Both the position numbers and the translations under genes were made by a program. The notes below the pieces were generated by a model, which saw only the letters and a list, made by a program, of their open reading frames with translations, searched no databases and was not told where the DNA came from. A stretch of 64,000 nt of DNA from Eutreptiella sp. 'Long Island Sound 2002' (Eukaryota > Protista > Euglenida). Positions 1,386 to 21,630 of the stretch are shown here, in pieces (position 1 is the first letter of the stretch; the number at the start of each line of letters is the position of its first letter). The stretch covers positions 60,698,001-60,762,000 of the forward strand of contig OZ038378.1 in assembly GCA_964036045.1 (NCBI GenBank), read 5' to 3'.

Positions 1386-3013
1386 ACTTATTTTTTTGAT
1401 ACCATGGTCACCTAAAAGGACCATCCAAGGTGTGTAAAGCATGTTTTAAGCCGTATTTACGTGTTTTTCACGGGACTTGGGCATTAGGTCGGGGGCGGGG
1501 GTCTCCGAAGGGATTGGTACACAACGTGCTTGTGCAATTTTTCACCCTGTAGAGCTCAAAAATGGAAGTTTTTGAAACTTGTGTTTTTGATATTTTGCAC
1601 CACTCAAACTGACCATCCAAGGTATATAAAGCATGTTTTAGGCCGTATTTGGGTATGAAGTCCGGGGCGGGGGGTCTCCCAAGGGATTGGTACACAACCC
1701 GCTTATGCAGTTTTTCACCCTTGGCAGCTCAAAAATTGAAGTTTTCGAAACTTATTTGTATGATATTGTGACCACACAATATGACCATCCAAGGTATGTA
1801 AAGCATGTTTTAGGCCGTATTTACATGTTTTTTACCCTATTTGGGTATTAAACCTTGCGGGGGGGGGGGCTCCCAGGGGCTTGGTACACATTCTGCTTAT
1901 GCAGTTTTTCACCCTGTAGAGCTAAAAAATGGAAGTTTTCGAAACTTGTGTTTTTGATGTTGTGCCCACTCCAAATGACCCTCCAAGCTATATATAGCAT
2001 GTTTTAGGCCGTATTTACGTTTTTTTCACCCGATTTGGGTATCAGGTCCGGTGGGGGGGGGGGGGTGGGGGGGGGTCTCCCAAGGGATTGGTACACAACT
2101 TGTTGTGCAGCTTTTCACCCTAGGCAGCTCAAAAAACGAAGCTTTCAAAACTTATTTGTATGATATTGTGACCACACAATATGACCATCCAAGGTATGTA
2201 AAGCATGTTTTCTGCTGGATTTACATGATTTTGACCCTCTTTGGGTATGAGGCCTTGAGGGGGGGGGGGGGGCTCCCACGGGATTGGTACACAACGTGCT
2301 TACGTAGCTTTTCACCGTGGGCAGCTCAACAGTCCAATTTTCGGAAACTTACTTTTTTGATAGCGTGATCACGTAAAATGACCAGCAAGGTATGTAAAGC
2401 ATGTTTTAGGCTGTATTTACGTGTTTTTCACCCTATTTGGGTATTGGCAGCACCGGGGGGGGGGGGGCTCCGAGGCATTGGTACACAACATGCTTATGCA
2501 TTTTTTCACCCTTGGCAGCTCAAAAAATTGAACTTTTCGAAACTTGTGTTTTTGATATTGTGACCACTCAAAATGACCATCCAAGGTATATAAAGCATGT
2601 TTTAGGCCGTATTTACCTGTTTTTCACCCTATTTGGGTATTAGTTCCGAGATGGGGGGGGGGCTTCCAACGGACTGTTACACAACCTGCTTTGGCAGTTT
2701 TTCACCCCGTACAGCTCAAAAATTGAAGTTTCCGAAACTTATTTGTATGATATTGTGACCACACAATATGACCATCCAAACTATGTACAACATGTTGTAG
2801 TCCGTATGTACGTGTTTTTCACCCTATTTGACTATTACGTCCAGGGGGGGGGGTCTCCCAAGGGATTGGTACACAACCTGCTTATGCAGCTTTTCACCGT
2901 GGGCAGCCCAAAAGTCGAAGTTTTGGAAACTTACTTTTTTGACATGGTGATCACCTAAAATGACCATCCAAGCTATGTAAAGCATGTTTTAGGCCGCATT
3001 TACGTGTTTTTCA
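1386..3013. repeat. ~190-bp tandem satellite (family S190), about 8.5 monomers
   Basis: GACCATCCAAGG-type anchor recurs every ~170-205 bp (near 1420, 1611, 1782, 1977, 2182, 2371, 2576, 2771, 2962). Length variation lies mostly in the poly-G tract before CTCCCAAGGGATTGGTACACAAC. Confidence 0.97.
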
Positions 3014-4394
3014 GACGCGCCCCCACCAGCTGCAGGGCCGTCCCGTGTTGCGCCACATACTGCGTAGCGTGGTCCCCGAATGTGCGGTTGCAGGCCAGCT
3101 GGGCCGAGACGCCGTACGCCACTTTGGCGTGCAAGGTGTCCGCCCCCCAGCCCAAGCCAACCAGGACGTGGCACCAGTGGGTTGAGTGCTAGAGGGTCTC
3201 GGCGAGGGCGTCCGCCTCGGTGCGGGGTGCCCCCTTGGGGGGGAGAATTTGTTTGGCCGGGATGCCCTGGCGCACCATGACACCTACCCCCCCTGCTGGC
3301 GCATCCTAGACGCCCCCCCCCGGGATTCCAAGGGCGCCCCCAAAAAAGCTTGCGAGGCCGAGGCCCCGTCCTGTGCGCGCATCACCCGCGGCGCCACTGC
3401 CGTGAGGCGGGTCTCCAAGGTCAGCACCACGTGTGCTCGCCAGTCAGCGACCGTGTGCCAATGCACACACAGGGACGTGATGTTCGCAAGCGCGACGCGC
3501 ATGGGGCCCGGGTGGGGCTCGATGTCCCCGAACCATAACACGAGGAGGGGGGGGAAGGCCCTGCACTAGGGGGGGGGGGGGGCGTCCCGCCCCGGGAGCC
3601 CCGGTCCGTGGCAGGGGAGAGAGGTAATCTCCACCACCCACATGAGATTGTCCGTCGCTGGTCACAGGGTGCAGGGAGGGAGGTTAGAGGGGCAGCCAAT
3701 CATGCCTTCAGGTTATCTGTCGACCCAAGTCCTGCATCGCCATGGTCACGCAATTGGACCCGGTCCCCATCCAAGGGTGGGCGCGCTGGGCGGCGGAGCG
3801 GGCGGCGCCGGGGGGAGCGGCGTTCCGCCACGGGCGCGCGGCCGGGCAAGCGGCGGCGCACGTTCGGGGCCGCCCCGTTCCCAGTCGCGCGCGAGGCGGA
3901 GGGTCTCGCGGAAGACCTCGTACGTGTAGTCGTGGACCGGCCCCGGCCCAGCGCGGCTGATGGCATCGGGCCACAGCGCCGTGGCGTGGACTTCCCCCGG
4001 CTCCGGTAGGACGGCCAACCACACATCGGTGACCACACGGAGGAGGGCGTGGACGTTGTAGGCCACCTCCCTCCACGTCGCCTCAGGCCCAGGGTAGGGG
4101 GGCGGCTGGCGGGAGGGGTCATCGTCCCAGACCCGGCCCCACCATTCCAGGCCCACGGCGTGGTCCCTGCCGGCGGCCGTCGTCCCCTGGAAGAGGGTGA
4201 GGCGGCGGCGCGGGCGGAGGAACCAACAGGGAGGGGGGTCGTCCCGTTGCTCAACACCGCCGAGCAGGGTCTGCCGCCACAGCGGCTCGCCTGTCTCCCC
4301 CGCCACACGGGGGCAAGGAACTTGCGCCACGTGTACAGGAGGGGGCCGCCGCGGGCATCCGGCCGGGGGGCGCGCGTGAAGAGGAGCCTTGGGG
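3014..4394 (-). mobile_element. Internal antisense fragment of the same retroelement (Trp-rich domain, 2A-like motif, APE N-terminus)
   Basis: ORF 3746-4447(-) matches the Trp-rich domain at 8600-9240. ORF 3284-3541(-) reads WFGDIEPHPGPMRVALANITSL...LETRL (APE motifs I and II). Flanked by S190 on both sides. Confidence 0.92.
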
Positions 4395-4563
4395 GGGGGG
4401 GGGGCTCCCAGGGGATTGGTACACAACCTGCTTCTGCGGCTTTTCACACTGGGCAGCCCAAAAATTCAACTTTTCGAAACTTGTTTTTTCGATATTGTGA
4501 CCAGACGATATGACCATCCAAACGATGTACAACATTTTTCAGGCCGTATTTCCGTGTTTTCCA
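4395..4563. repeat. S190 partial monomer (left target flank of copy B)
   Basis: Poly-G, CTCCCAGGGGATTGGTACACAAC, ...AGGCCGTATTTCCGTGTTTTCCA, ending at the element 5' junction. Confidence 0.95.
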
Positions 4564-4615
4564 GGCCTCTTATTGTGAACCTGCACGTGGTGAGGCTTCC
4601 TAGCTGATCCGCAAT
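4564..4615 (+). ncRNA. Putative minimal HDV-like self-cleaving ribozyme at the element 5' end
   Basis: P1 GGCCTC(4564-69)/GAGGCT(4592-97) with G1.U; P2 ATTGTG(4572-77)/CGCAAT(4610-15); P3 ACC/GGT; 7-nt L3 TGCACGT with U and G at the HDV U20/G25 positions; J4/2 C4604-T-G-A (CNRA); P4 reduced to CTAG. P1.1 is mismatched here but intact in copy C. Confidence 0.72.
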
Positions 4616-4680
4616 CTTGTTGTTTTCTCTTTTGGCGCACCCGCGTCTTCCCCTTCTCTTGCCGTCGCGCCCTGCGCACA

Positions 4681-7081
4681 ATGGTCGACCAAGTTGGGGT
4701 GGCCACCCAGCTGGCCGCCCTCCTACAGCGCCCCGCACTCCTTACGGCCCTTGGTGCGGCACCCTTCCTCGCGGGCGTACCGCCCGCGGCCACCGACATG
4801 GGGGCGGCGACGCGCAGCCGCAACCGCTCCCGCTACAAGGGGCGTAAGGGAGGCAACCGCCCTGCCCAGCCGCCCCCCGCCCCCCCGACGGCGGAGCAAG
4901 CTATGATCGCCTCGCTCCAACGACAAATCCCGTCCCTTGAGGGCGCAATCAACACCCTCCGCCGTGAGCTGATGGAGTCACGAGGCGAACCGGCCCCCGC
5001 GGCCTCCGCGCGGACCGGCACAGCCACCGCGCCCCAGGCCGCGCCCGCAGCCACGACGACAACGAACCAGAAAGCCGCATCGACGACCCCCCGCGCGGCA
5101 GCGACGAACGGCAAGACGGCGGCCACACCGCCCAAGACGTCCACCGGCTGGCAGCTCGTGGGCTCCGGGCACAGCCGGCGCTCCAAGGGTGCCCACGAGA
5201 AACCAGGGGCAGCGCCCCAGACCCGCCCCCATTTGCTTGCTTGTGGACGAACACCGGCTCGGGCTAGCGGCGCCTGGAGCACCACGATGGGTGCCTCTGC
5301 CGGTCAGTGCACCTGCCTGCCCACCCCTTCGCCTCCCCGCAGCCCTACCGGGCGCGGGAGGACATCAAGGTTGCCCGGGGCAATATCGTGCTCTGAGGCA
5401 TTGGCGGCGTCGCGGAGGCGTCCGCCCCCCCGCCCCCCCAGCAGGCCGGCCCGGGTCGCACGACCTACGCCTCGGCGACGCGGTCCACGGCACGGGGCCC
5501 CCGGCCGGGCGCCGTGCAGGTGGTGGCGGCCGCCGCGCGCCCCTCGGCGGGGCTTTCCCCGATGGAGCCCACGCCGGCGGCCCTATGGGCCCTGCTGCCC
5601 TGGACCACGGCGGTGCAGCCCCTCCGCCTCCTCCAGGGCGAATCCCGGGAGAAGCTCCGGGAATGGGGCATCACCCAGATCACGCTAGGGCGGCATCCCG
5701 GCGGAGTGGAAGCAGCCCTCCCAGGAGGGGGCCGTGCATTGCGTGGCGCTGGTGGGCTGCACGGTCCACGAGGCCCACCTCGCGGCTGCGGCCGCCGTCG
5801 CGGCCCACGACGCCGTCCATCAGGTCACCGCCGTGGTGCACGTCCAGGGCGGCAGCAGGGCGGCCCCCACGGTGGCGACCCTGCCGCAGACCCTCCGCCG
5901 GACGAGGGCCAACCCTGGCGGTGCCGGGCACGGTTGTGCAGGGCGTAGTGCGCACTGAGTGCCAGCCCTGGGAGACGGCGAACCCCGCGGTGGTGGACCC
6001 CGCGCCGCCGGGGCACATCATGCAGCTCCTCTGGGAGCGCCTTCCGGAGGATGACGACCGGGTGTTGGCGGAGCTCCCGGACGAGGACCCGGCGCCACTG
6101 GACCCTGTGCCAGCCACCGTTCGGGCCATTTGCGTCCTGGACCCGGCGATTGTGGCGGATGCCGACTTGCTTCGGCTCCACGTGGGAACCTTTGGAAGGG
6201 ACCACGCCTGGCAGCACCTCAAGCCGCTCATGGGGGCAGCACTGCCCCATCCCCCGCCCATGCAGACCGCGGTCCGGGGTTCGATGGTTGAGGTCTCCAC
6301 CGACCTCCCGTCGTCTGTGGCCCCGCTGGTGATGCGCGCCAGCGGCAAGGCCCGGGGGATGCACTTCCGGCCCTAGATCGTCACGGGCGCTGCCTGCCAG
6401 CACCCCGCGTGCGTGCTGTGGTTCAAGCAGCCACCGGAGCGCCGCGGGCCCTCCCCGGCGGTTTGGAAGACACTCGCCGAGGACCAGGAGCTCCGCTCCA
6501 TGTTCGCGGGGCTGGTGGACGGGGGCGCCCCCGGCAACGTGGGGGTCCGGATGTGGGGTGCCAAACCGGCGGACCCCAAGGTGGTGGCGCACATCGCCAA
6601 CCTACTGGGAGCCCCGGCCCCGGCGCAGACCACATCCGTACAAGTCCGGGGCTACCCCGCGCAACTGGGGCTGGCGCTGGACGAGTATGCGCAGCTCCGG
6701 CGCTACGCCCAAGAGGCATTTGGGCCGGTGGTGCCCAATTGCGTGCACCGCTGCACCTAGCTGGCCCACAGCACCCTCCACCGCCCGGTCGTCGACCTGG
6801 AGCTGGAGGGGGTGCCTGAGGATTGGCAGGGAGTGCAGCTGGGTGCGCCCGACACCCGCCTCCCGGACCCGACATGGGAGCGGACCACCCGCAGCTCCTG
6901 CCAGGGGCGCTACAAGCCAGTGGGACCCAGGGCCCGGATGACACGCCCGAAAGGATCCGACGAGGTGCATCAGCAGCCTGAGGGCGCCCAAGACGTGCCG
7001 GACCACACGGGGGACCCGGCCATGGCCTATGCGGAGCCGGCCGCAATCGACGTCGATGAGGAGGACGAGGACATTCTTTAA
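4681..7081 (+). pseudogene. ORF1 (gag-like; N-terminal coiled coil, late RRM-like segment), frameshifted, ~800 codons
   Basis: Starts MVDQVGVATQLAALLQ, with heptad AEQAMIASLQRQIPSLEGAINTLRREL. Segments at 5514, 5734, 5825-6376, 6413-6760 and 6812-7081 are collinear with copy C. TSVQVRGYP...AFGPV resembles an RRM. Ends DVDEEDEDIL*. Confidence 0.8.
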
Positions 7082-9552
7082 TGTTCTTAGTCCTCCTCTT
7101 CCTGACCCTCTGCCTGCACGCGGTGGAGTGCCCTGGGTGGCTGCTCAGTACGGGGGCGATGACCCACGGGGGTTGGATCGTGCGACCCCAACCCCGGCTC
7201 CTTGCGAGACGCACCCGTTGCTAGCAGCGGTGGCAACAGCGGCGGTACTAGCCCCGGCACCCCCCCCCTTGGGGAGGCACCAGGGACCGGACCCCCGACC
7301 CGGCTGGAGGCTGTCTATACGCCTAGAGCCCACGAGGGCGCCCCGGCGCGAGGCGATGGCCCTGGGTCCTCTTTGGGGGAGGGGTGCAGGCCGGACAGTG
7401 GAGAGGGTCTCCACACGACAGTGGGGGGTTGGCAGTACAGCAAGGGGCACAGCCGCTTGCCGCGCTACGGCTCCCCCTTTCACCGGGTGCGGCCGGCGTG
7501 GCAGCCGGCGGACTCCCCCACCCCCCGCCCCCCCCACCGGGGAGAGCAGGAGTCCGGGGGGCAGCCCGGGGGCGAGCAAGCCAGTCAAGGAACCGACAGC
7601 CAAAGGGGGCGCGCCAGCCCCCAACACCGAGGGGCCCCTGCCCCGACCTGTTGACCCCGGAGCCCACTGCGGCCATGCAGCGAGCAGAGGCCCCCTGCCC
7701 GCAAGGGGCGGCCCGCTCGCCGCAAATGACCAGAGCCAGCGGACTCGCCGGGGCGGGGGGGGGGGGGGGGGCAGTGAACCAGATCGCCTCGGTGTCCTGT
7801 TGGGCACGTCCGGTGCGGGTGGTGGTGGAAACGGCGGCGGTACCAGCCCCGGCAGCCCCCCTCCTGGAGTGGCCCCAGTGTCCAGACCCCCGACCTCGCT
7901 GGAGGGTGTCTATATGCCCACAGCCCACGAGGGCGCCCCAGGGCGAGGTGATGGCACTGAGTCCCCCCCGGGGGCGGGGGCCGGCCCGGGCAGTGGCGCG
8001 GGGCCCCACCCTACAGTGGGGGGGTTGGCGGTACAATAGGAGCGCGGCCGCCGCGGCACTGCGGTTCCCCTTGGCGCCGGGCTTGGCCGGGGCGGCGACC
8101 GGGGGTCCCACCCCCCCCGCCCACCCCTCCCCTTCCCCCCCCCCCCCCCCTCGAGGGACAGCGGGTGCCAAAGGACCCGGCGGGCGACAAGCGCTGCCTG
8201 CCCAGGGAGCAAGGGGGGCGGGGAACGCAACCCAGCCTCCCCCCCAGCCACACCCTCCCCCCCAACCACACCCTCGGCCCCCAGCGGCCGGGCCTGGTCC
8301 CCTTTTGACCTGCAGCTCAACTGTTTTGCACATGGCTCGTGGAACACCCCTCGCGGAACACCATCGGCGGAACTAGGGCCTCGCCCTGGTTCGCCGGTGG
8401 TACCGCCAGGCCGCCGAGGTGTTGCCGCTCCGCCCACAGCGATGGGGCTTGGCCCACACGGACTGCGCCCTGGCCCCCCTTGTCGGCCTGCTCCCTAGGC
8501 TGGTGCGGCTCCAGGACCTCCTGGCGGGGGGCCTGGAACGGATGGTCGCACTGCGGTCACCGGCCGGAGGACAAGGCGGTCCGGATCACCGCCGTCCGTC
8601 TCCCAAGAGGCCCTGAGTTCGAGACCAAGAGGGCCACTGTGGGCCACGCCCTGCAGTGGAGGTACCCTTAGGTCCTCTTCGCGCGCGCCCCCTGGCCGAA
8701 TCCCCGCGGCGGCCGCCTCCCGTACACGTGGCGCAAGTTCCTTGCCCCCATGTGGAGGGAGGAGACGGGCAAGCCGCTGTGGCGGCGGACCCGGCCCCGC
8801 CGCGTGGAGCAATGGGACGACCCCCCCCCCCTGCTGGTTCCACCGCCCGCGCCGCCGCCTCACCTTCTTCGAGGGGACGACGGCCGCCGGCAGGGACCAG
8901 GCCGTGGGGGTGGACTTGTGGGGCCGGGTTTGGGACAACGACCCCGCCCGCCAGCCGCCCCCCTACCGTGGGCCTGAGGCGACGTGGAGGGAGGTGGCCT
9001 ACGCCGTCCACGCACTCCTCCCCGTGGTCAGCGATGTGTGGTGGCCCGTCCTGCCGTAGCCGAGGTCCACGCCACGGCGCTGTGGCCCGATGCCCTCAGC
9101 CGCGCTGGGCCAGGGCCGGGTCAGGTCCACATGTACAAGGTCTTCCGGGGGTCCCTCCGCCTCACGGGCGAATGGGAGCGAGGCGGTCGCGAGCGTGCGC
9201 CGCCGCCTGCCCTTCCGCGCGCCCGCGGCGGCACGCTGCTCCCCTAGGCGCCACCCCCTCCGCCGCCCAGCGCGCCCGCCCTTGGGTGGGGACCGGGCGC
9301 GACTGCCCGACCTTGGCGCTTCAGGACTTTGGCCGACAGTTAACCCGCAGGCATGCGTGGCTGCCCCACTTAGCTCCCTCCGTGCACCCTGTGACCAGCG
9401 ATGGGCAAACCTGTGCGAGGGCAGGGGACTGGCTCCCTCCCCCCCCATCGGCTCGGGCTCCCGGGGAGGGACCCCCCCCCCCCCCTAGTGCCGGGCCTTC
9501 CCGCTCCCTTCTCTTGTTAAGGTGCCGGGACATCGAGCCCCACCCGGGCCCC
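7081..9552 (+). pseudogene. ORF2 leader: hydrophobic N-terminus, duplicated Gly/Pro-rich region, Trp-rich domain, 2A-like peptide
   Basis: ATG 7081-7083 overlaps the ORF1 TAA. Reads MFLVLLFLTLCLHAVECP; low-complexity region 7200-8330; Trp-rich domain ~8380-9240; SRSLLLLRCRDIEPHPGP ends at 9552. Frame continuity is broken at homopolymer runs and cannot be proven. Confidence 0.6.
9499..9552 (+). other. 2A-like (StopGo) peptide variant, LLLLxCGDIEPHPGP consensus
   Basis: In frame directly before the APE Met at 9553. Second copy at 3503-3550(-) reads LLVLWFGDIEPHPGP. Matches D(V/I)ExNPGP except N to H. Confidence 0.7.
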
Positions 9553-10360
9553 ATGCGCGTTGCTCTGGTGAACATCACATCCCTGCGCCTGCAGTGGCAC
9601 ACGGTCGCTGAATGGTGAGCGGACGTGGTGCTGATCACGCAAACCCGCCTAACGGCAGTGGGGCAGCGGGTGATGCGCGCACAAGCCGGGGCCTCGGGCT
9701 GGTCAGCCTTTTAGGGGGCGCCCGTGGAGTCCCAGGGGGGGGGGGGGCATGTGGCATGCGCCAGCAGGGGGGGTAGGGCATCCCAGCCAAACAAGTCCTC
9801 CCCCCCAAGGGGGCACCCTGCTCCGAGTCGGACGCCCTCGCCCTGACCCTCTGGCATTCCGACCGCTGGTGCCACGTCCTGGTTGGCCTGGGCCGGGGGG
9901 CGGATACTTTGCATGCCAGGGTGGCGTACGGCGTTTCGGCCCAGCCAGCCCTCAACCGTACTTTCTAGGACCACGCCACACAGTACGTGGTGCGACACGG
10001 GACGACCCCGCAACTGGTGGGGGGGGACTTGAACTTTGACCTGAACCACCCAGTTCGGGTGCCGCCGTCTGTCCTGGCGTCCCTCCTTACTCGCCGGCTG
10101 GCGGATGCGGACCTGGAGCTGGCGACCGCCTTGGGGAAGGACATCCTCTGCTCGTACCACGGCCCGGAGGGAACACGATCCTCGCGCATTGACGGCCTGT
10201 TGGTAGACACGCGCCTGGCGGCGCTTCTCCATGCGGCGGAACGGCTGCCGCGAGGGGCAATCCCGGGGCACACCCCGGTACGTTTCGACATCCACCTGCG
10301 GGGGGCCTCGCAACGGGTGGTCAAGTTTGTTCGCCCCGAGCCGCTGGTGCCGGCCTAGCG
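9553..10360 (+). pseudogene. Apurinic-like (APE) endonuclease domain of ORF2
   Basis: NITSL, I(T/E)TRL, GGVGI, VYG, GGDLN, SRIDGLL and PGHTPV motifs occur in the APE order; stops and frameshifts present. Confidence 0.9.
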
Positions 10361-11592
10361 GGAGAAGCACGAACGACTCCTTCTTGTTCAACGCGTGCTC
10401 GACCCGATGGAGACGGGGTGGCAGGCGGCTCTGGCGACCGGGGGCGTGGACCGCACTTGGGCCTTTTGGACCACAACTGCAGAGGAGACACTCCTCGCCC
10501 TGGCCTGCCCGGACTTCACTCCGGACACCCTCCCGGCCGGGGCCACCCTCTAGCTGGCCCCTCCCCCCCTCCCCCGCGGCAGGGGCACGGACCAACTGCT
10601 CCGGGAGGTGCGCCTCCGCCCCAAGCAGCGGCGAGACACGGGGGGGGGCCTGACATACCCGGTGGCACACAACCAGGTGGCCCATGGACCCCTCCGGGAG
10701 GTCTTGCGCTGGCTGGGACGCCCAGCGCAGGGGCTAGGCGTTCTGCCGCGAGCTGTGCAGCAGGCGTGGACGGCCCTCCGACGCCGCTTGGACACGCTCC
10801 GCGCGCTCGGCCCAAAGTATGCGGACTTTGAGCCGGGGGGCGCGCCCGATAGGCTGGCCCCGTTGGCCTCCCTTCGCCGCCTCAGCGTAGCGCTGGTGGG
10901 CAGGGTCCGGGCGACGCTCCGGGCGGAGGACAAGGACCGCGTCCGGGAGTGGCGCGCCTGGCTCGAGGAATCCTGGTCCTCGGATCAGGGGGCCGTGTAC
11001 CGCTAGCTGAAGGACGAGTCCTACGCCCCCCTAGTCACTCTCCTCAACAGGCCGGATGGCACGGCCACGGCCAACGTGGCAGAGATGGATGGCCTCATGC
11101 AGGTTGCCTGGCGCCCCATCAACGGCAAGTATGCGTCGGACCCAGAGCCGGACCCAATGGCCTTCCTGCGTCGGTACGTCCACCACGTACGGCGCGTCCC
11201 CATTATTGCCTCGCAACTTGATGGCCCCCGCCTGCGCAACGGGCTCTCCCGCCTGAAGCCCTCGGCGTTGGGGCTGGATGGGTGGAGTCTGGCGGACCTC
11301 CGCTTCCTCCCCGACAGGCTGCTGGGCTAGTTGGCGGACCTCCTGCGCGAGGTGGAGCGGCCGGGGAAATAACGCGCGCGCCTGGCCGAGGGCTACACCG
11401 CCCTCATCCCCAAGGAGGGGCCGCCGGGGCCCTTGAAAACCCGCCTGCTCACCGTCCTGTCCATGGTCTACCAACTGTGGGCCGGGGTGCGCTTGGTGGA
11501 CGCCATTGCGTGGCAGGAGGCCTGGGCCCACCCGGCGGCCTCTGATTTTCCGCCCGGCCAGGAGCGCCCTGGACGGGGCGGCGGTGACACAG
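10361..11592 (+). pseudogene. RT linker and N-terminal RT subdomains (copy B)
   Basis: LKPSALGLDGW, AEGYTALIPKEG, LTVLSMVYQLWAGVR, QEAWAHPAA; collinear with 16400-17630. Confidence 0.88.
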
Positions 11593-13535
11593 ATCACGGA
11601 CTTGGTAGGCAACCTCCCTCCACGTCGCCTCAGGCCAAGGACAAGGGGTCGGTTGGCGGGCGGGGTTGCTGTCCCAGACCCGACCCCCCCATTCCACCCC
11701 CACGGCGTGGTCCCTGCCGGCGGCCGTCGTCCCCTCCAAGAGGGTGAGGCGGCGGCGCGGGCGGAGGAACCAGGAGGGAGGGGGGTCGTCCCGTTGCTGC
11801 ACACGGCGGGGCCGGGTGGGCCGCCGAGCTCGCCCGTCTCCTCCCGCCACATGGGGGCAAGCAACTTGCGCCATGTGTACGGGAGGCGGCTGCCGTGGGG
11901 ATCCAGCCGGGGGGCGCGCGCGCAGAGGACCTTGGGGTACCTCCACTGCAGGGCCTGGCCCACAGGGGCCCCCTTGGTCCCGAACTCAGGGCCGCACGGG
12001 AGAACGACAGCGGTGATCCAGACCGCCTTGTTCGCGGGCCGGTGACCGCCGGTGTCACCACCCGTTCCAGGCCTCCGACAGGAGGTCGTGGCATCGCATG
12101 ACCCCGGGGAGCAGCCCCACGAGGGGGGCCAGGGCGCAGGCCGGGTGGGCCCAGCCCCACCGCTGGGGGCGGCTCGCGAACACCACGGCGGCCTGGCGGT
12201 ACCACCAGCGAACCAAGGAGAGGCCGTGCTGCCGCCGCTAGTGTTCCGTGAGGGGGGCAGGGGGGGCCAGGGCCGCGTGCCCGCGCCCTCGCCCTCAGCC
12301 TCGTCTCCCTCCGCGACCTCTTCGTCTATGCGCCATGTGTAAAACAGTCGGGCTGCAGGTCGACAGGGGGCCAGGCCCGGCCGCTAGGGGCCGGGGGTTG
12401 GGGTGGGGGGGAGGGAGTCTCGCGTCCTCCGCCCCCCTCGCGCCCAGGCAGCGCGTGTCGCCCGCCGGCCCTCCCGGCCCCTGTTGTCCCCCGTGGGGGG
12501 GGGGGGGGGGGATGGGGGGGGGACCAATGGTCACCGTTCCGGCCACGCCTGGCGCTAGGGGGAGCCGCAGTGCCGCGGCGGCTGCGCCGCCTGGTGTACG
12601 GCCAACCCCCCCCAATAGCGTGGGGCCCCGAGCCACTACCCGGGCTGGCCCCCGCCTCCGGGGGGGGTCCACTGCCATCGCCTCGCCCCGGGGCGCCCTC
12701 GTGGGCTGTGGGCGTATAGACACCCTCTAGCCGGGACGGGGCTCCGGCCACTGGGGCCACTCTAGAAGGGGGGTTGCCGGGGCTGGTACCGCCGCCGTTT
12801 TCACCACCACCCGCGCCGGGCGTGTCCAGTATGGAACCGGGGCGATCTGGCTCGCTGCCGCCCCCGTCCCAATGAGCCCACACACTCTGGTCAGTTGCGG
12901 CGGGTGGGCCGCCCCTTGCGGACGGGGGGCCTCTGTTCGCGTCACCGCCGCGCCGGGCTTTGAGGTCAGCTTGTCGGGGCAAGGGCCCCTCGGTGTCGGG
13001 AGCTGGCGCGCCCCCCGTCGTTGCCGTCCCCATCACAGGCAGTGCTCGCCCCTGGGCCGTCCCCCAGGCCCCTGCTCTCCCAGCGGGGGGGGGGGGGGGG
13101 GAGTCCGCCGGCCGCCACACCGGTCGCACCCGGTGGGAGGGGGAGCCGCAGCGCCGCGGCGGCTGTGCCCCGTATTGTACCGCCAACCCCCCACCGCCGT
13201 GGGGGGACCCTCGCCACTGCCCGGGTTGCACCCCTCCCCCAAAGAGGACCCAGGGCCATCGCCTCGGGCCGGGGCGCCCTCATGGGCTGTGGGCCTATAG
13301 ACACCCTCCAGCCGGCCCGGGGTTCTGGTCCCTAGTGCCTCCCCAAGGGGGGGGGCGCCGGGGCTGGTACCGCCGCTGTTGCCACCGCCACTGGCACCAA
13401 GTGCGCCCGGCATGAAGCCGGGGCTCGGGGTCATGCTGCGCCCCCCCCCGTGGGTCATCACCCTCGTCCTGGGCTGCCCGCATGGGCACCCTACCGTGTG
13501 GAAGCCGAGGGTCAGGAAGAGGAGGACTAAGAACA

Positions 13536-15933
13536 TTAAAGAATGTCCTCGTTCTCCTCATCGACGTTGACAACGGCCGGCTCCGCATTGGCCATGGCCA
13601 GGTCCCCCTTGTGGTTCAGCGCGTCTCGGGAGTCCTCAGGCTGCTGTTGCACCTCTCCGAATCCTTTGGGGCGTGTCATCCGGGCCCTGGGACCCATAGG
13701 CTGGTAGCGCTCCTGGCGGGAGCTGCGGGTGGTCCTCTCCCAGGTCGGGCCCGGGAGGCGGGTGTCGGGCGCGCCCGGCCGCACACCCTGCCAGTCCTCA
13801 AGCACCCCCTCCAGCTCCAGGTCGAAGACCGGGCGGTGGAGGGTGCTGTGGGCCAGCTAGGTGCAGCGGTGGACGCGGATGGGCACCTCCGGCCGAAATG
13901 CCTCCTTGGCGTAGCGCCGGAGCTGCGCATACTCGTCCAGCGCTAGGCCCAGTTGCGCGGGGTAGCCCCGGACCCGCACGGAGGTGGTTTGCGCCGGGGC
14001 CGGGGCGCGCAGCAGGTTGGCGATGTGCGCCACCACCTTGGGGTCCGCCGGTTTGGCACCCCAGATCCGGACCCCCACGTTGGCGGGGGCGCCCCCGTCC
14101 ACCAACCCCGCGAACATGGAGCGGAGCTCCTAGTCCTCGGCAAGGGTCTTCCAAACCTCCGGGGACGGGCCGCGGCGCTCTGGTGGCGGCTTGAACCACA
14201 GCACAAACGCGGGGTGCTGGTAAGCCGCGCCCGTGACAATCGAGGGCCGGAAGTGCACCCCCCGGGCCTTGCCGCTGGCGCGCATCACCAGCGGGGCCAG
14301 GGACGAGGAGAGGTCGGTGGAGACCTCGACCATCAAACCCCGGACCGCGGCCTGCATGGGCGGGGGATGGGGCAGTGCTGCCCCCATGAGCGGCTTGAGG
14401 TGCCACCACGCGTGGTCCTTTCCAAAGGCTCCCACGTGGAGCCGACGCACGTTGGCATCCGCCAGGACCCCCGGGTCCAGGACGCAAATGGCCCGAACGG
14501 TGGCTGGCACAGGGTCCAGTGGCGCCGTGTCCACGTCCGGGAGGTCCGCGGACACCCGGTCGTCATCTTCCGGGAGGCGCTCCCAGACGAGCTGCATGAT
14601 GTGCCCCGGCGGCGCGAGGTCCACCACCGCCGGGTCCGCCGTCTCCCAGGGCTAGCGCTCAGGGCGCACCACGCCCAACAAGGCCGCACCCGGCACCGCC
14701 AGGCTTGCCTTCGTCCGGCGGAGGGTCTGCAGCAGGGCTGCCACCGTGGGTGCTGCCTTGCGGCCGCCCTGGACGTGCACCAGGGCGGTGACCCGCTGTA
14801 CGGCGTCATGGGCCGCGAGGGCGGCCGCAGCCGCGAGGTGGGCCTCGCGGACTGTGCAGTTCACCAGCGCCATGCACCGCAGGGGCCCCTCTTGGGAGGG
14901 CTGCTTCCACTCCGCCGGGTGCAGACCCCCCGTGATCTGGGCGATGTCCCATTGCCGGATCTTGTCCTGGGACTCGCCGTGGTAGAGGCGGAGCGGCTGC
15001 ACCGCCATCGTCGAGGGGAGCAGGTCCCATAGGGCCGCCACCGTGGGCTGCACCGGGGGGAGCGCCGCCGAGGTGCGGGCGGCGGCCGCCACCGCCCGCA
15101 CGGCGCCCTGCCGTGAGCCCCGCGACGCGGACCGCATCGCCGGAGCGAAGGTCGAGCGACCCGGGCCGGCCTGCATGGGGGGAGGGGGAGCGGATCCCTC
15201 CGCGACGCCGCCAATAACTCAGAGCGCGATATTGCTCCGGGCCGCCTTGATGTCCTCCTACGCCCAGTAGGGCTGCGAGGACGCGAAGGGGTGGGCAGGC
15301 AGGTGCCCCGACCGGCGGAGGCACCCGTCGCGGTGCTCCAGGCGCCGGTAGCCCCAGCCGGTGCCCGTCCACACACATGGGGACTCGGGGGGGGATGGGG
15401 GCGCTGCCCTTGGTCCCTCGTGGGCTCCCTTGGAGCGCCGGTTGTCGCTGGAGCCCGCTAGCTGCCAGCCGGCGGGCGTCCTAGACGTTGCGGCTGCCGT
15501 CTTGCTGCTCGCTGCGGGGGGGGGGGGGGGTCGTCGATGCGGCGTTCCGTTTCGTCTTCGTGTTCTTGGGCGCGGCTTGGGCCGCGGTGGCTGTGCCGGT
15601 CCGCGCGGAGGCCGCGGGGGCCGTTTCGCCTCGTGACGCTGCCAGCTCGCGGCGGAGGGTGTTGATTACGCCCTCAAGGGACGTGATTTGGCGCCGGAGC
15701 GAGGCGATCATAGCCTGCTCCGCAGTTGGGGGGGCAAGGGGCGGGTGGGCAGGTCGGCTGCCCCCCTTACGCCCCTTGGAGCGGGAGTGGCTGCGCGCCG
15801 CCGCCCCCTCGTCGATAGCCGCGGGCGGTGCGCCCGCGAGAAAGGGTGCCAGCGCCGCACCGAGGGCCGTGAGGGCCTCGGGGCGCTGTAGGAGGGCGGC
15901 CAGATGGGTGGCCACCCCCGCTTGGTCGTTCAT
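13536..15933 (-). pseudogene. ORF1 of copy C
   Basis: Starts MNDQAGVATHLAALLQ; ends VVNVDEENEDIL* with the same TAATG overlap at 13538-13534. Confidence 0.8.
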
Positions 15934-16014
15934 CGTGCGCATGGCGCGAGGGCGAGACAGGAGGGCGAGACGGCGAGGGGGAGACACAGGAGCGTCAAGA
16001 GAGAAAACAAGAAG

Positions 16015-16066
16015 ATTGCGGATCAGCTAGGCAGCCTCACCAAGTGCAGGTTCACATTAAGAGACC
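16015..16066 (-). ncRNA. Second copy of the putative HDV-like ribozyme
   Basis: GGTCTC-TT-AATGTG-A-ACC-TGCACTT-GGT-GAGGCT-GC-CTAG-CTGA-TC-CGCAAT. P1.1 (GC/GC) is intact; L3 G is changed to T; one P2 mismatch. Confidence 0.68.
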
Positions 16067-17099
16067 TTAATTACCCGCTTCGAGCACCGCCGTATGTCCT
16101 GGCGACCCTCATGACTCGCCGGCCGGCGGATGCGGACCTCGAGCTGGCGACCGCCTTGGGCAGGGACCCCCTTTGCTCTCTCTGCCAGCTGCTCGTACCA
16201 CGGCCTGGAGGGAACTCGACCCTCGTGCATTGACGGCCTGCTGGTTGACACGCGCCTTGGCGGCGTTGCTCCATGCGGCGGAGCGGCTGCTGCCAAGGGC
16301 AATCTCGGGACACACCCCGGTATGTTTTGAACTCCACCCGCGGGGGTGTCGTAGCGGGTGGTCAAGTTTGTCCGCCCCAAGCCGCTAGTGCCGGCCCAGC
16401 GGGGGAGCACGAACCACTCCTCCTCGTACAACACCTACTCGACCCGTTGGAGGCGGGGTGGTAGGCAGCCCTGGCTACCGGGGACGTGGACCGCGCTTGG
16501 GCCTTTTGGACCACGACTGCGGAGGAGGCTCTTCTCGCCGTGGCCTGCCCGGACATCACTCCGAACACCCTCCCGGCCGGGGCCACCCTCTAGCTGGCCC
16601 CTCCCCACCTCCCCCGCGGCAGGGGCATGGACCAACTGCTCCGGGAGGTGTGCCTCTGCCCCCAGCAGCGGCGAGACACCGGTGGGCCCCTGACTTGCCC
16701 GGTGGCACGCATCCAGGCGGCCCGGGGACCCCTCCGGGAGGTCTTGTGCTGGCTGGAACGGCCAGCGCGGGGGCCAGGCGTTCTGCTGCGAGCGGTGCAA
16801 CAGGCGTGGGCGGCCCTCCGACGCCGCTTGGACAGGCTCCGCGCGCTCGGCTCGGAGTATGCGGAATTCGAGCCGGGGGGCGCGCCCGGCAGGCTGGCCC
16901 CGCTCGCCTCCCTCCGCCGTCTCAGCACGGCGCCAGCGGGGAAGGTCCGGGCGACGCTCCAGGCGGAGGACAAGGACCGCGTCCGGGAGTGGCGCGCCTG
17001 GCTCGAGGAGTCCTTGTCCTCGGATCAGGGGGCCGTATACCGCTGGCTAAAGGACGAGTGCTACGCCCCCCCTGGCCAGCTTCCTCTCTAGGCCGGACG

Positions 17100-18650
17100 G
17101 CAGAGCCACGGCCAACCTGGCGGAGATGGATGGCCTCCTGCATGACGCCTCGCGCCCCATCAACCGCAGGTATGCGTCGGACCCAGAGCCGGACCCAATG
17201 GCCTTCATGCGCCGGTACGGCTGCCACGTGCGGCGGGTCCCCATGATTGCCTCGCAGCTCGACGGCCCCCGCCTGCGCAACGGGCTCTCCCGCATGAAGC
17301 CCTCGGCGTTGGGGCTCGAGGGATGGAATGTGGCCGACCTCCGCTCCCTCCCTGACACGCTGCTGGGCTGGTTGGCGGACCTCCTGCGCGAGGTGGAGCG
17401 GCTGGGGAAGTGGCCCACCCGCCTGGCCGAGGGCTACACCGCCCTCATCCCCAAGGAGGGGCCGCTAGGGCCCTTGAACAGTGCCCGCTCACCGTCCTGT
17501 CCATGGTCTACCGGCTGTGGGCTGGGGTGCGCCTGGTGGACGCCATTGCGTGGCAGGAGGCCTGGGCCCACCCGCCGGCCTTTGTCTTCCGCCCGGCCAG
17601 GAGTGCCCTGGACGTGGCGGCGGTGACACAGGTCCTCCTAGAGCTGTGTCGTCTGCGGGGGTGGGCCGTCGCGGGGATGAGCATCGATTACGTCAAGTGT
17701 TTCAATCTCATCCCCCAAGCGGTCGTGCTGGCCCTGCCGTTGGAGCTGGGCATGGACCCGGGCACGTGTCGTGCCCTAGGGGCCATGTACAAGCAGCTTC
17801 GCCGGGCCTTCAAGATCGCAGGGGCCTTCGGCCTATGGTGGCAGGCCACCAACGGCATCCTCCAGGCGTGCCCCTTGTTGCCGATCGTAGTGAATGTGCT
17901 CACCACGATCTGGAAATTGGAGGTGGACTCCCTACGCCGTCAGGTGTGCGCACAAACGGCCGCCCTCCCGCCGGCTCTGGAAGAGGACGCGGCAGACAAC
18001 CTACAACCGGGGGCCCTGCTCCCCCTCAAGGATGCCAGGCCCGGGTACGCTGCGCTAGGGTCGTCGAGCTACGCGGACGACACCCAGGCGGTGGCCCTGG
18101 GCGCGGCCGCGCTCCAGGACACGGTCCCCGCGACGGAGGAGTGGCTACGGCAGGACGTCCGCGTGGACAAGTCCTGCTTGTCGGTTCAGGGGGAAAAAGG
18201 CGCCCCGGCACTGCTACTCCGGGTGGTCCCCATCCCGCTGGTGACGACCTCCCCCCACCTCGGTGTCGACATCGGCATTGGAGGCTCCAAGGCCACGGGA
18301 CCGGTGCTGTCCCGGCGCCTTGAGGCGGGGAGGAGCGCCCTGCGTCGCCTGCCCCATCTCTCGCCCTACGACCGGCGACGGCAGGCCATCAGCACCCTAG
18401 TCACCCCACTGGCGCTCCATGGGGTGGCGGTGGCGTCGGTGACGGAACCCGACCTGCGGGGACTCGAGACCGCAGTGGTTCGGGCCCTGTGGGGGCCGGC
18501 GCGCGTGTCCCGGGCCAAGGAGGTCCTCTTTACCGTCTTGTCCAAAGCGCATCGCCTGTCCCCGATCATGCACACGCGGTATGAGCGCCTCCTCCCCGTG
18601 GCCCGCCTGGCCCGCCGGCCGGGGGTCATGCAGGTCTTTGCCTAGGCTAT
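17100..18650 (+). pseudogene. Non-LTR reverse transcriptase core and thumb
   Basis: AGMSIDYVKCFNLIP (motif A), TNGILQACPL (motif B), SYADDT (YADD at 18070-18081), PHLGVDI; ORF 17410-18645. Confidence 0.95.
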
Positions 18651-19019
18651 TTGGGAGTTCGGGGGCCGCCCACCCGAGACGGGCCCGGTGGGGGGCGCGC
18701 TCCGCATGGCGGCCTCCCTTGGCTGGACCCCGCACGAGGGCTGGTGGTGCTGGGACGTCCCAGGGTAGGAGCACCGCCTGCACTGCGTGCATGAGCCGCT
18801 CCGCCAGCTCTAGCACCGAGTCCAGGACAGCCTTCGCTGCCACTCCTCGCGCCAGTTGGAGGCGCGGCGCCCCGTCACCTTCGGGGGGCGGGGCGCTGGG
18901 GCGGATGGCCCGGCCTGCCGCGCAGCGCTGCGGGCGGCCTTCACGGAGTTGGGGAAGTCGCTGCTGCGCGGGCTCGTAGCCGGGACCATGTGGACGGCGG
19001 CCCAGGTGTCGGGCCAGAG

Positions 19020-19110
19020 CACGAGGGCCAACGCCGCGTGGCCCCACTGCGGCGCGGCGCACGAGGACGAGGCCCACGTCATGTAGGACTGCCCAGAGTG
19101 GGGCGACGCC
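19020..19110 (+). other. CCHC zinc finger of ORF2 (degenerate)
   Basis: AAWPHCGAAHEDEAHVM*DCPEW fits C-x2-C-x8-H-x4-C with the first Cys mutated to Trp; copy A keeps HVLWDCPEW. Confidence 0.8.
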
Positions 19111-21196
19111 AGAGGAACGTGGCTTCCTTGACTGAACGAAGGGGCGGGGGCCATCCCCAGTCTGGGCCCGCAGGGCCGGTGGCCCTCCTACCTGCGGAAA
19201 GCGGGCCTTTTCCCCCTCCGACTAGCGCAGGGGGTGGACCGGGAACTCCTTGACGATTTCCTGTACCGCCTGTATGGCATGTACTTGGCGGTGCTCGCGG
19301 CCCGAATGGCGGCCAGCGCGGGGGATCAACCGGGCCACGGCGACTACCTCTTCCCGGAGCAGCCGCATCCGCGTCCCCGCGACCCCTACCCCTGGGATGC
19401 CTTCGTTGGCCCCATACCGGGGGACGCCGTCTGCCACCAGCCGCGGCTGCAGCCGGGGGTGCCAGCGGACTGGAGGTGGCCCCAGGACTTCATCCACGAC
19501 CTGGTCAGGTGGGCCCGGGCGCTACCCCGGGCTCCGCGGCCGGCGGAGGTCTCTTGGGCTGAGTTGGCCCTGGACTATGAAGCCTTCGTGGGGCGGGCGC
19601 TCCCGGCCTCTCCGGACCACCGGCTGAGGGGCACACGCCTGCCATTGGGGGAACGAGTCCAAGTCGTGCGCAACGCGGTGGGGCGGGCGGAGCGCCACCT
19701 GGCGGCGGGCGCATTGCTGGGCGGGGCCCCACCGGGGCGCTGTCGCTCGCTCCCCCCCCTCGGGGGGCGCGTGTGCGCGGCGCTCTCGGCTCGACCGTAC
19801 TTCGCGGCGCGCCACGAGGTCATGTTGCAGCTGATGGGCCTGGCGGCGCTCTGCTGCGACTCGTGGGCCCGGTGCATGCGGGCGCCCGCGCGCATGCCGC
19901 CACAGCACAATGACTGCTTTCTCATGGATTATTTCCCCCGCCTCCTCGAGGGGGGGCCTCCCTTGCTTTCGTATGCCCGGCGGCCCCCGCGGGCTCCGGC
20001 CCGCGGCGTCCCTCTTGCGGCGCCGCAGCGCAGCCGCCCCCCACGTGCGGGCAGCGGCACGCAGGGCGCGCTCTGCTTGGAGCATGGGGCGCCGTCGTGT
20101 GCCCGATGCAAGAGCCTAGGTTGGGGTATCAGCCGCGCCTGCTGAGCTGGCCACGAAGGCCACGAGGGCTCCTCCGGGCGCTCAGGCTGCCCCATAGCCC
20201 CGCCCCGGGTCGCGCCGGGCCGCCAGGTGCTCGTCTTGAGGCCTGACGCGCGTGGGCGGCGGCGTTGTCCTCTTGGCTGGGGCGGGCCCGCCCGGCATCC
20301 CAGGCCCTCCCCGACTCGGGCCCCCCGGCGGCACGCCGGTGCGCAGCCCCGCCCAGAGTGCTGGGCACGCGCCCTTCCCCTGCCCTGGGGCCGGACGCCT
20401 CCGGGCCGGCGAAGCGCCACACGCCTAACCGGGACAACCGGGGGGATCCGGGGGGGGGGGGGGGTTCACACCGAGCGACGGGTGGGGGGGCAGCAGTCCC
20501 CCTATCACCCAAGCCAGCTGGGGGGGGGGGGGGGGGGGGGCAGCAACCCGGGACCGACCCCCCCGGCTTCCTCCGCCCGCGCGGGGGCCGTGGGGGCACC
20601 ACCGGGTGGGGGGGCAGCAGACCTCCTCTGGCCCCGGCCACCGGGGGGGGGGGGGGACGGCCCGGGGCCGGCCCCCTCCTCATCCTCTGCCGGTGTGGGG
20701 GTCTCGGTGGAGCCGGCGGCGCGGCACGACCCCCCCCAACCCCCAGTAGAGCGACCCCCACCGTCGCTCCCGGATTTTTTGAGCCACATCTCAGCGGCCC
20801 TGAGCAGCCACGCTCCGCCGCGGCAGCGGTCCCCTCCGCGGGCACGACGACGGCCCCAACCCAGGGCCACCAGGTTGGTGGCGGACATGCTGCGCGCGCG
20901 TCCGCCCCCCCCCACGGGCCACGGACGGCGCAGCCAGGGGGGCCTCCTCCTCCTCTGACCCAGTGGCGGACGCGCCCTCGGCACCGTCGCCATCCCAGTC
21001 CACCCTGCCGCCGTGGCGGCGTCACGGCAGGGCCAGCACGGAAGAGACCTAGTCCCCTCCGGCTCGTCCCTCCTGGCCGCCGTGCAGGCACAGGCGGGGG
21101 GCCTGTAGGGGAGCACACGGGCGCCTGAACTCGAATCGGCCCACCTCCCCGCCCCTCTGCCTCTGTACATAGACCAGTGGACGCTAATCGGCGAAT

Positions 21197-21630
21197 GCCG
21201 TATTTACGTGTTTTTCACCCTATTTGGGTATTGGCCGCACCGGCGGGGGGGGGGGGGGGGGGCGTTAAGGGATTGGTACACAACCTGCTGATGCAGTTTT
21301 TCACCCTGGGCAGCTCAAAATTCGAACTTTTCGAAACTTATTTTTTTGATACCATGATCGCCTAAAAGGACCATCCAAGGTATGTAAAGCATGTTTTAGG
21401 CTGTATGTACGTGTTTTTCACCCTATTTGGGTATTAGGTTCAGGGGGGGAGGGTCTCCCAAGGTATTGGTACACAACACAACCTGCTTATGCAGCTTTTC
21501 ACCCTGTAGAGCTCAAAAATGGAGGTTTTGGAAACTTACTTTTTTGATATCGTGATCACCTAAAATCACCACCCAAGGTATGTAAAGCATGTTTTAGGCT
21601 GCATTTATGTAGTTTCCACCCTATTTTGGG
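21197..21630. repeat. S190 satellite, ~2.3 monomers (right target flank)
   Basis: Same monomer as 1386-3013; starts GCCGTATTTACGTGTTTTTCA. Confidence 0.96.

Follow-up and report, generated by a model that had tools for sequence, protein, structure and literature searches.

A candidate minimal, P4-less HDV-like ribozyme at the first base of satellite-inserted LINEs in a euglenid genome

HDV-like ribozymes need about 50 nucleotides and five conserved bases (PMC4870747); they cut at the first base of P1 and their core is formed by L3 together with J4/2 (PMC4908430). At the base of P3, the U and the G of L3 make a reverse wobble within this core, and the C of L3 pairs in P1.1 (PMC4836649). At the 5' end of non-LTR elements such ribozymes are established for R2 and L1Tc, and they have been described for R2, RTE and Baggins (Eickbush and Eickbush, 2010; Ruminski et al., 2011). 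The elements L1Tc and NARTc of Trypanosoma cruzi bear L1TcRz, also known as Pr77 (PMC3185411, PMC1874656). The P4 helix is dispensable in a minimal HDV-like subclass, and the P4-less phage ribozyme drz-Mtgn-1 self-cleaves in vitro with a length of only 51 nt (PMC10879173). These minimal P4-less forms came from metagenomes (Riccitelli et al., 2014, as cited in PMC10879173), and nearly 99% of the minimal drz sequences are found in phages, as theta ribozymes of gut Caudoviricetes, where their role is the processing of tRNA 3' trailers (PMC10879173). Our literature search found no paper linking HDV-like ribozymes with Euglena.

Here we describe a candidate of the minimal form at the start of a LINE in a euglenid. 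We analyzed a 64-kb stretch of DNA, in the following called the window (G000:C1:60698001-60762000), which lies within a 2.28-Gb euglenid genome. A block of 72% GC between positions 3000 and 21200 consists of nested copies of one LINE family, designated F1, within a satellite of ~195 bp. The satellite monomer at 4395-4563 (plus strand) represents the insertion target, and F1 joins it after '...GTGTTTT(T)CA'; in the repeat this insertion point follows '...GTGTTTTTCA'. Copy B covers the 5' 7.0 kb of the element (4564-11595, plus strand) and is interrupted by copy C, an inverted 5' portion of 4.5 kb (11598-16066, minus strand). Copy D (16063-21195, plus strand) is 5'-truncated and comprises the 3' 5.1 kb with the end of the APE domain and a reverse transcriptase carrying GILQGCPLS and GYADD; it is followed by ~21 nt of satellite (21196-21217) and then by the remainder of the monomer. 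The window also holds two smaller F1 pieces. A comparison with eight other genomic copies revealed that the element has a length of ~10.6 kb and is continuous across 10023/10038, so that the element boundary placed earlier at 10023 was wrong. Copies B and C are old, dead insertions.

F1 codes for ORF1 (ATG at 4681 in copy B), a 2A-like peptide DIEPHPGP (~9499-9555), an APE-type endonuclease starting at ~9560 and a divergent reverse transcriptase. The RT motifs were spotted by eye and homologues of the element carry Pfam RVT_1; a Pfam search of the window ORFs gave zero matches. The RT is split by frameshifts and the GC-rich DNA yields long spurious ORFs. In the 2A-like peptide (window 9499-9560) an H replaces the N, and the peptide lies directly 5' of the APE domain start (MRVALVNITSLR...). 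Runs of 13-22 G occur at 4384-4401, 20440-20660 and 21247-21263, that is, at the satellite monomer boundary and in the 3' region of the LINE.

The first 52 nt of copy B (4564-4615, plus strand) can be read from the sequence as a minimal HDV-like fold. P1 comprises 6 bp between GGCCTC (4564-4569) and GAGGCT (4592-4597) with G4564 opposite T4597, P2 is formed by ATTGTG (4572-4577) and CGCAAT (4610-4615), and P3 by ACC (4579-4581) and GGT (4589-4591), the latter adjoining the 3' strand of P1. The 7-nt loop L3 reads TGCACGT (4582-4588). J1/4 (4598-4599) is followed by CTAG (4600-4603) as the sole bases before C4604, the putative catalytic base, with which the CNRA sequence CTGA (4604-4607) of J4/2 (4604-4609) begins. 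In copy C the motif occupies 16015-16066 of the minus strand and its G1 is at 16066. The majority sequence of F1 is composed of GGCCUC (P1), UU (J1/2), AUUGUG (P2), an unpaired A, ACC (P3), UGCACGU (L3), GGU (P3'), GAGGCU (P1'), GC (J1/4), CUAG (linker), CUGA (CNRA), two further bases UC and CGCAAU (P2'). Its J1/4 pairs with bases 3 and 2 of L3 to form P1.1, and the core bases are G1 opposite U34, U19, C21 and G24 of L3, and C41 in the CNRA part of J4/2. This is the strand order of a nested double pseudoknot, P1-P2-P3-L3-P3'-P1'-(P1.1)-J4/2-P2', and the complete pseudoknot of the original prediction was recovered with every listed feature in place. The statement that P4 consists only of CTAG was correct with regard to the bases, but these are better read as a 4-nt linker and no P4: the P4 helix is absent, and only 4 nt (F1) or 5 nt (the sister family F2, see below) separate P1.1 from the candidate catalytic C. 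Since P4 is dispensable in the minimal subclass, its lack does not exclude the F1 motif from the HDV-like ribozymes but places it in this subclass.

The copies in the window carry distinct lesions, as had been proposed. In copy B, T4598 stands in place of a G within J1/4, so that the C21-G35 pair of P1.1 is lost; the equivalent site is G in nearly all other copies (~13,460 of a depth of ~13,500 in one DNA sequencing run). Copy C has lost the conserved G of L3 (G24>T at 16043) and one P2 pair (T10>A at 16057), and the change C3>T at 16064 leaves a wobble pair. Because each of them has a core lesion, in P1.1 and in the L3 G respectively, both copies would be impaired as ribozymes. The consensus is intact: the majority sequence of 31 F1 copies is unbroken and 16 of these copies form all 17 pairs.

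A helix-by-helix comparison revealed that the F1 motif is laid out like drz-Mtgn-1 (52 and 51 nt, respectively). Both have a P1 of 6 bp that starts with G.U, a J1/2 of 2 nt, a P2 of 6 bp, a P3 of 3 bp, a 7-nt L3 of the form U-N-C-N-C-G-N, a P1.1 of 2 bp, a short linker instead of P4 and a CNRA sequence ahead of the 3' strand of P2, and both satisfy one and the same descriptor. This is a likeness of layout, with no primary-sequence relationship shown, and the settings differ: drz-Mtgn-1 and the theta ribozymes are located in phage genomes at tRNA 3' trailers, whereas the F1 motif is located at the 5' end of a eukaryotic LINE. In this respect F1 resembles L1TcRz, as in both cases an HDV-like motif, in F1 a candidate ribozyme, occupies the first bases of a euglenozoan APE-type LINE, and L1Tc/NARTc and F1 encode a 2A-like peptide. 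The L1Tc core ACC-TCAACGT-GGT of the original prediction is indeed present in oligo R77 of PMC1874656. Compared as RNA, this P3-L3-P3' core (ACC-UCAACGU-GGU) and that of F1 (ACC-UGCACGU-GGU) agree in 10 of 13 positions and are followed directly by the 3' strand of P1. L1TcRz is 77 nt long, has a P4 helix, starts with C instead of the G.U pair, has a P1.1 of 1-2 bp and is also a promoter. Against the 77-79 nt Pr77 signature of L1Tc/ingi only the 13-nt P3-L3 core is alike, and P1, P2, P4 and length differ. Beyond this core the sequences cannot be aligned, and we do not class the F1 motif as a Pr77 signature. A similar L3 is also found in CPEB3, so convergence of the F1 and L1Tc cores is possible.

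The position of the motif within the element is defined by its 5' junctions. We found at least 166 candidate copies of the F1 5' end in the genome, and in 27 of 30 F1 loci the similarity of the flanks ends exactly at G1. The flank is mostly satellite ending in '...gtgtttttca', with unrelated DNA at several loci, and the small variations of the junction are on the target side and never on the element side. F2 likewise begins with G1 at 27 of 30 loci, non-satellite flanks included. Both families insert site-specifically and in a single orientation in the satellite. In copy B, G1 stands straight after the satellite, whereas in copy C it adjoins the 5'-truncated start of another copy (16063) and not the target. 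A full F2 copy in L039 has ~21 nt of satellite ('taccctctttgtgtgtttttta' in L039) on both sides (L039:6044-6065 and 15222-15243), and a matching stretch of ~21 nt is present in the window at 21196-21217. Judging from these sequences, the flanks read as a target-site duplication of ~21 bp, which would regenerate the target at the 3' junction and thus give rise to the head-to-tail tandem copies in L039, L042 and L062-L065.

The sister family F2 (L039) shares the target site with F1, and its ORFs are 67% identical to those of F1. There is no BLAST match between the 5' UTRs of the two families. The F2 copy at L039:6066-15257 contains long open frames of 821, 311 and 1691 aa. Many copies of the F2 5' end are 98-100% identical to one another over the 5' 235 nt (L042-L057) and therefore F2 was probably active recently, or still is. 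The relatives retrieved by protein searches, F2 (L039) among them, all came from a second assembly, which represents this organism or one very close to it.

The F2 motif has 53 nt and consists of GGUGCU, GU, GUGGUG, C, GCC, UACCCGA, GGC, UGCACU, GU, U[A/C/U]UUA, CUGA, G and CCCCAC. Up to position 36 its register agrees with that of F1 base by base, and the P2 columns also coincide. F2 keeps 15 of the 17 pairs, with the mismatches U6xU29 (6-29) and U13xC48 (13-48), and in seven of the 17 pairs both partners differ between the two families and still pair with each other. These compensatory pairs are located in P1 (3-32, 4-31, 5-30), P2 (9-52, 11-50), P3 (16-28) and P1.1 (20-36). Seven of eight double changes keep the pair, which has an estimated probability of ~0.016. 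Each compensatory pair counts as one event, as there are essentially two lineages, at most three. When 40 distinct copies are aligned without gaps, 91.5% of the cells are paired, compared with 31-55% if the partners are slid by 1-3 columns, and G1 stands opposite U34 in 34 of the 40 aligned rows. G1, U34, U19, C21, G24 and CUGA are invariant or nearly so in both families, and the C21-G35 pair is kept; these are the bases by which HDV-like ribozymes are defined. Other genomic copies retain most of the pairing of P1, P2 and P3, the loss of which had been named as one refuting outcome. A decayed third relative (L074:6953, minus strand) has a different 3' strand of P2, which is shifted by two bases and still forms 6 bp. 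Within its first 35 bases, many of the substitutions relative to F2 are C>T or G>A, a pattern that deamination would give in a methylated genome, and TTAGGG-like telomeric repeats (L074:7400-7500) lie ~450 nt upstream of this 5' end.

The motif is also more conserved than its surroundings. In F1 copies with an overall divergence of 6-14%, the cells at positions 1-52 depart from the majority in 2.8% of cases compared with 7.4% in the rest of the 5' UTR (Mann-Whitney p = 6e-4), a pattern that fits constraint on the source lineages. Among the 31 F1 copies all five core bases are present in 24. The CNRA sequence is located at 41-44 in F1 and at 42-45 in F2 (CUGA in both) and is retained in 28 of 31 F1 and 25 of 27 F2 copies. 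In the young F2 copies variation is highest at a position of the linker, where P4 would be.

Standard searches do not single out the motif. No Rfam family matches the window at the gathering score, and none matches at E <= 10 over 4400-4800; this is a failed test, although an expected one, since the HDV-type models (HDV_ribozyme, CPEB3_ribozyme and the drz models) carry P4 and ignore pseudoknots. Nested free-energy folding is unremarkable, with z-scores of -0.6 to -1.0, and in F1 it prefers a rival inner hairpin (11-14/21-24). In F2 a rival hairpin using the second GGUGC (11-15/30-34) is calculated at -17.8 kcal/mol versus -6.1 kcal/mol for P1 plus P3. The sequence GGUGC occurs twice in F2, at 1-5 and 11-15 (e.g., L048:1501-1515), and for this reason the 3' strand of P1 can pair with either of them. 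Pairing with the second one extends P3 into a stable hairpin, which could be a misfold trap or a switch. RNAalifold recovers P1 independently and proposes 11-14/19-22 with one covarying pair in place of P3. Alternative folds are known for HDV-type ribozymes. According to these folding models, the alternative nested folds are a real rival for the inner part of the motif.

This rival leads to a different explanation of the whole region, in which the 5' 52 nt are a conserved structured element with another job, for example an internal promoter like Pr77 of L1Tc or a protein-binding or translation element. The RNA's 5' end would then be set by initiation at G1, the RNA might fold into P1 with a small hairpin inside it and not into a pseudoknot, and the fit to the HDV-like fold would be vestigial or non-catalytic. 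A fixed 5' end of the full-length copies is to be expected with any defined start site, the nested consensus of RNAalifold is exactly P1 plus the hairpin 11-14/19-22 with its covarying pair, and in L1Tc the same 77 nt are promoter and ribozyme at once. No RNA sequencing run contained the element, and three small runs that may be RNA yielded no contigs. It leaves unexplained, however, why CNRA, U19, C21 and G24 are retained in both families, and the four compensatory pairs in P2, P3 and P1.1 are unusable by the nested alternative. Moreover, an independently validated ribozyme satisfies the same descriptor. We therefore regard another job in place of cleavage as improbable; a second function alongside cleavage is a different matter, as the two readings are not mutually exclusive.

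It could also be argued that the match is a coincidence between a loose HDV-like descriptor and a conserved 5' UTR, and that the structure has no role at all. Our first loose descriptor gave ~10 matches per 25 kb and missed copy B because of its lesion; as it was too permissive, it was replaced by a strict and a relaxed version with decoys. The strict descriptor demands a G.U start, a perfect 6-bp P1, a spacer of 8-10 nt, a 3-bp P3, a 7-nt L3, a 2-bp P1.1, a linker of 2-8 nt, CNRA and then a P2 of at least 6 bp. F1 and the published sequence of drz-Mtgn-1 satisfy it, but not one of 9 million random 62-mers with G as their first base does. In 236 kb of real sequence searched on two strands (472 kb) it matches only at base 1 of the element, in six copies, and the decoys with A, G or U at the catalytic C gave zero strict matches in the same 472 kb. 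The relaxed descriptor, which is needed by F2, has a rate of 1.6e-5 per G position and matches at a few unrelated places too; these matches, the high rate of the loose descriptor and the non-significant free-energy z-scores speak for coincidence. When the pair register of F1 was threaded over 146,000 sequence windows, at least 15 pairs were reached at a rate of ~1e-4. A genome-wide pattern for new P1 variants gave 99 matches compared with 159 in the control, which is noise, and a further pattern search of the genome for P1 variants found only a copy of family F5 and one F2 copy. A chance match would have to account for two families with unalignable UTRs that share one register of the motif beginning exactly with element base 1 (relaxed p ~1.6e-5 per position) and differ by the seven compensatory pairs, and for the conservation of positions 1-52 relative to the neighbouring UTR, and we consider it highly unlikely.

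Taken as sequence evidence, the data argue for the 52 nt of F1, and the 53 nt of F2, being a genuine minimal P4-less HDV-like ribozyme that processes the 5' end of the LINE, and we would put the probability of this reading at about three in four. What the genomic copies show directly is the motif and where it lies, how well it is conserved and how its pairs covary; from this we infer co-transcription, cleavage and a role of the cleavage. F1, inserted in one orientation within a highly repeated satellite, would be transcribed within a longer RNA that spans satellite and LINE. At its 5' end the element RNA would fold with P1 stacked on P1.1 and P2 on P3, the linker of 4-5 nt replacing P4, and the J4/2 cytosine C41 (4604 in copy B) would catalyse scission immediately 5' of G1. 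The scission would release the satellite leader and leave a unit-length LINE RNA beginning at G1, and we propose that full-length reverse transcription of this RNA is the reason why the copies begin exactly at G1. The most likely function of the self-cutting RNA would thus be to trim F1 RNA to its exact start.

Such a mechanism has a counterpart in R2, likewise a non-LTR element that inserts at a specific site of a repeated host sequence and has precise 5' junctions. The R2 ribozyme cleaves the co-transcript at the junction or close to it, and consequently R2 needs no promoter. The setting of the F1 motif, at the start of a non-LTR element within a repeated target, is that of the R2 and L1Tc ribozymes alike, which speaks for the ribozyme reading. 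The two elements differ in that R2 has a restriction-like endonuclease, an rDNA target and larger ribozymes with P4, whereas F1 is of the APE type, targets a satellite and lacks P4. The principle of an HDV-like ribozyme at the 5' end of a non-LTR element is well established, and what would be new here is the stripped-down form and the host group.

Further LINE families are present in the genome. F3 (L040, L041) is a third family with 41-49% RT identity, of which ~24 copies start at L041:6194/6195. We considered it as a third ribozyme lineage and rejected it, as it has a different common 5' end, is located outside the satellite and has no HDV-like fit. F3 is without the first ~500 codons of ORF1, and in L041 it adjoins a 2.2-kb array of a 38-bp repeat (L041:3998-6194). 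A search for ORF1 homologues retrieved F1 and F2 only. L075 represents a further LINE family and is 5'-truncated. The 12-mer CCTGCACGTGGT, identical to the P3-L3-P3' core of F1, recurs inside the ORF2 region of ~40 F2 copies, ~6.4 kb into the element (e.g., C4:5932979 and C7:28744979), which is probably a coincidence. Furthermore, a 24-nt spliced-leader sequence, which we take to be that of Euglena gracilis, occurs 5,458 times in the genome, on both strands of the chromosomes, and not at all in a reversed control, which marks the organism as a euglenid and not an animal; this number is far higher than expected from an SL-RNA gene array alone.

It is possible, though in our view rather doubtful, that P4-less HDV-like ribozymes are the standard 5' device of several lineages of euglenid LINEs and share descent with Pr77/L1TcRz through the common core (ACC-U..ACGU-GGU). 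If this were true, the motif would be an ancient euglenozoan retroelement module, its 52 nt would make it the smallest natural retrotransposon ribozyme known, and a form seen almost only in gut phages would have a eukaryotic home. The likeness of the F1 and Pr77 cores allows an ancestral origin of euglenozoan LINE 5' ribozymes to be tested against a convergent one. If the F1 motif cleaves, HDV-like ribozymes would extend to euglenids and the minimal P4-less form of the phage type would also be used by eukaryotic retrotransposons. Cleavage would also provide a 52-nt natural ribozyme together with a natural mutant series of hundreds of decayed copies, and would account for the expression from a satellite array of a LINE with no evident promoter.
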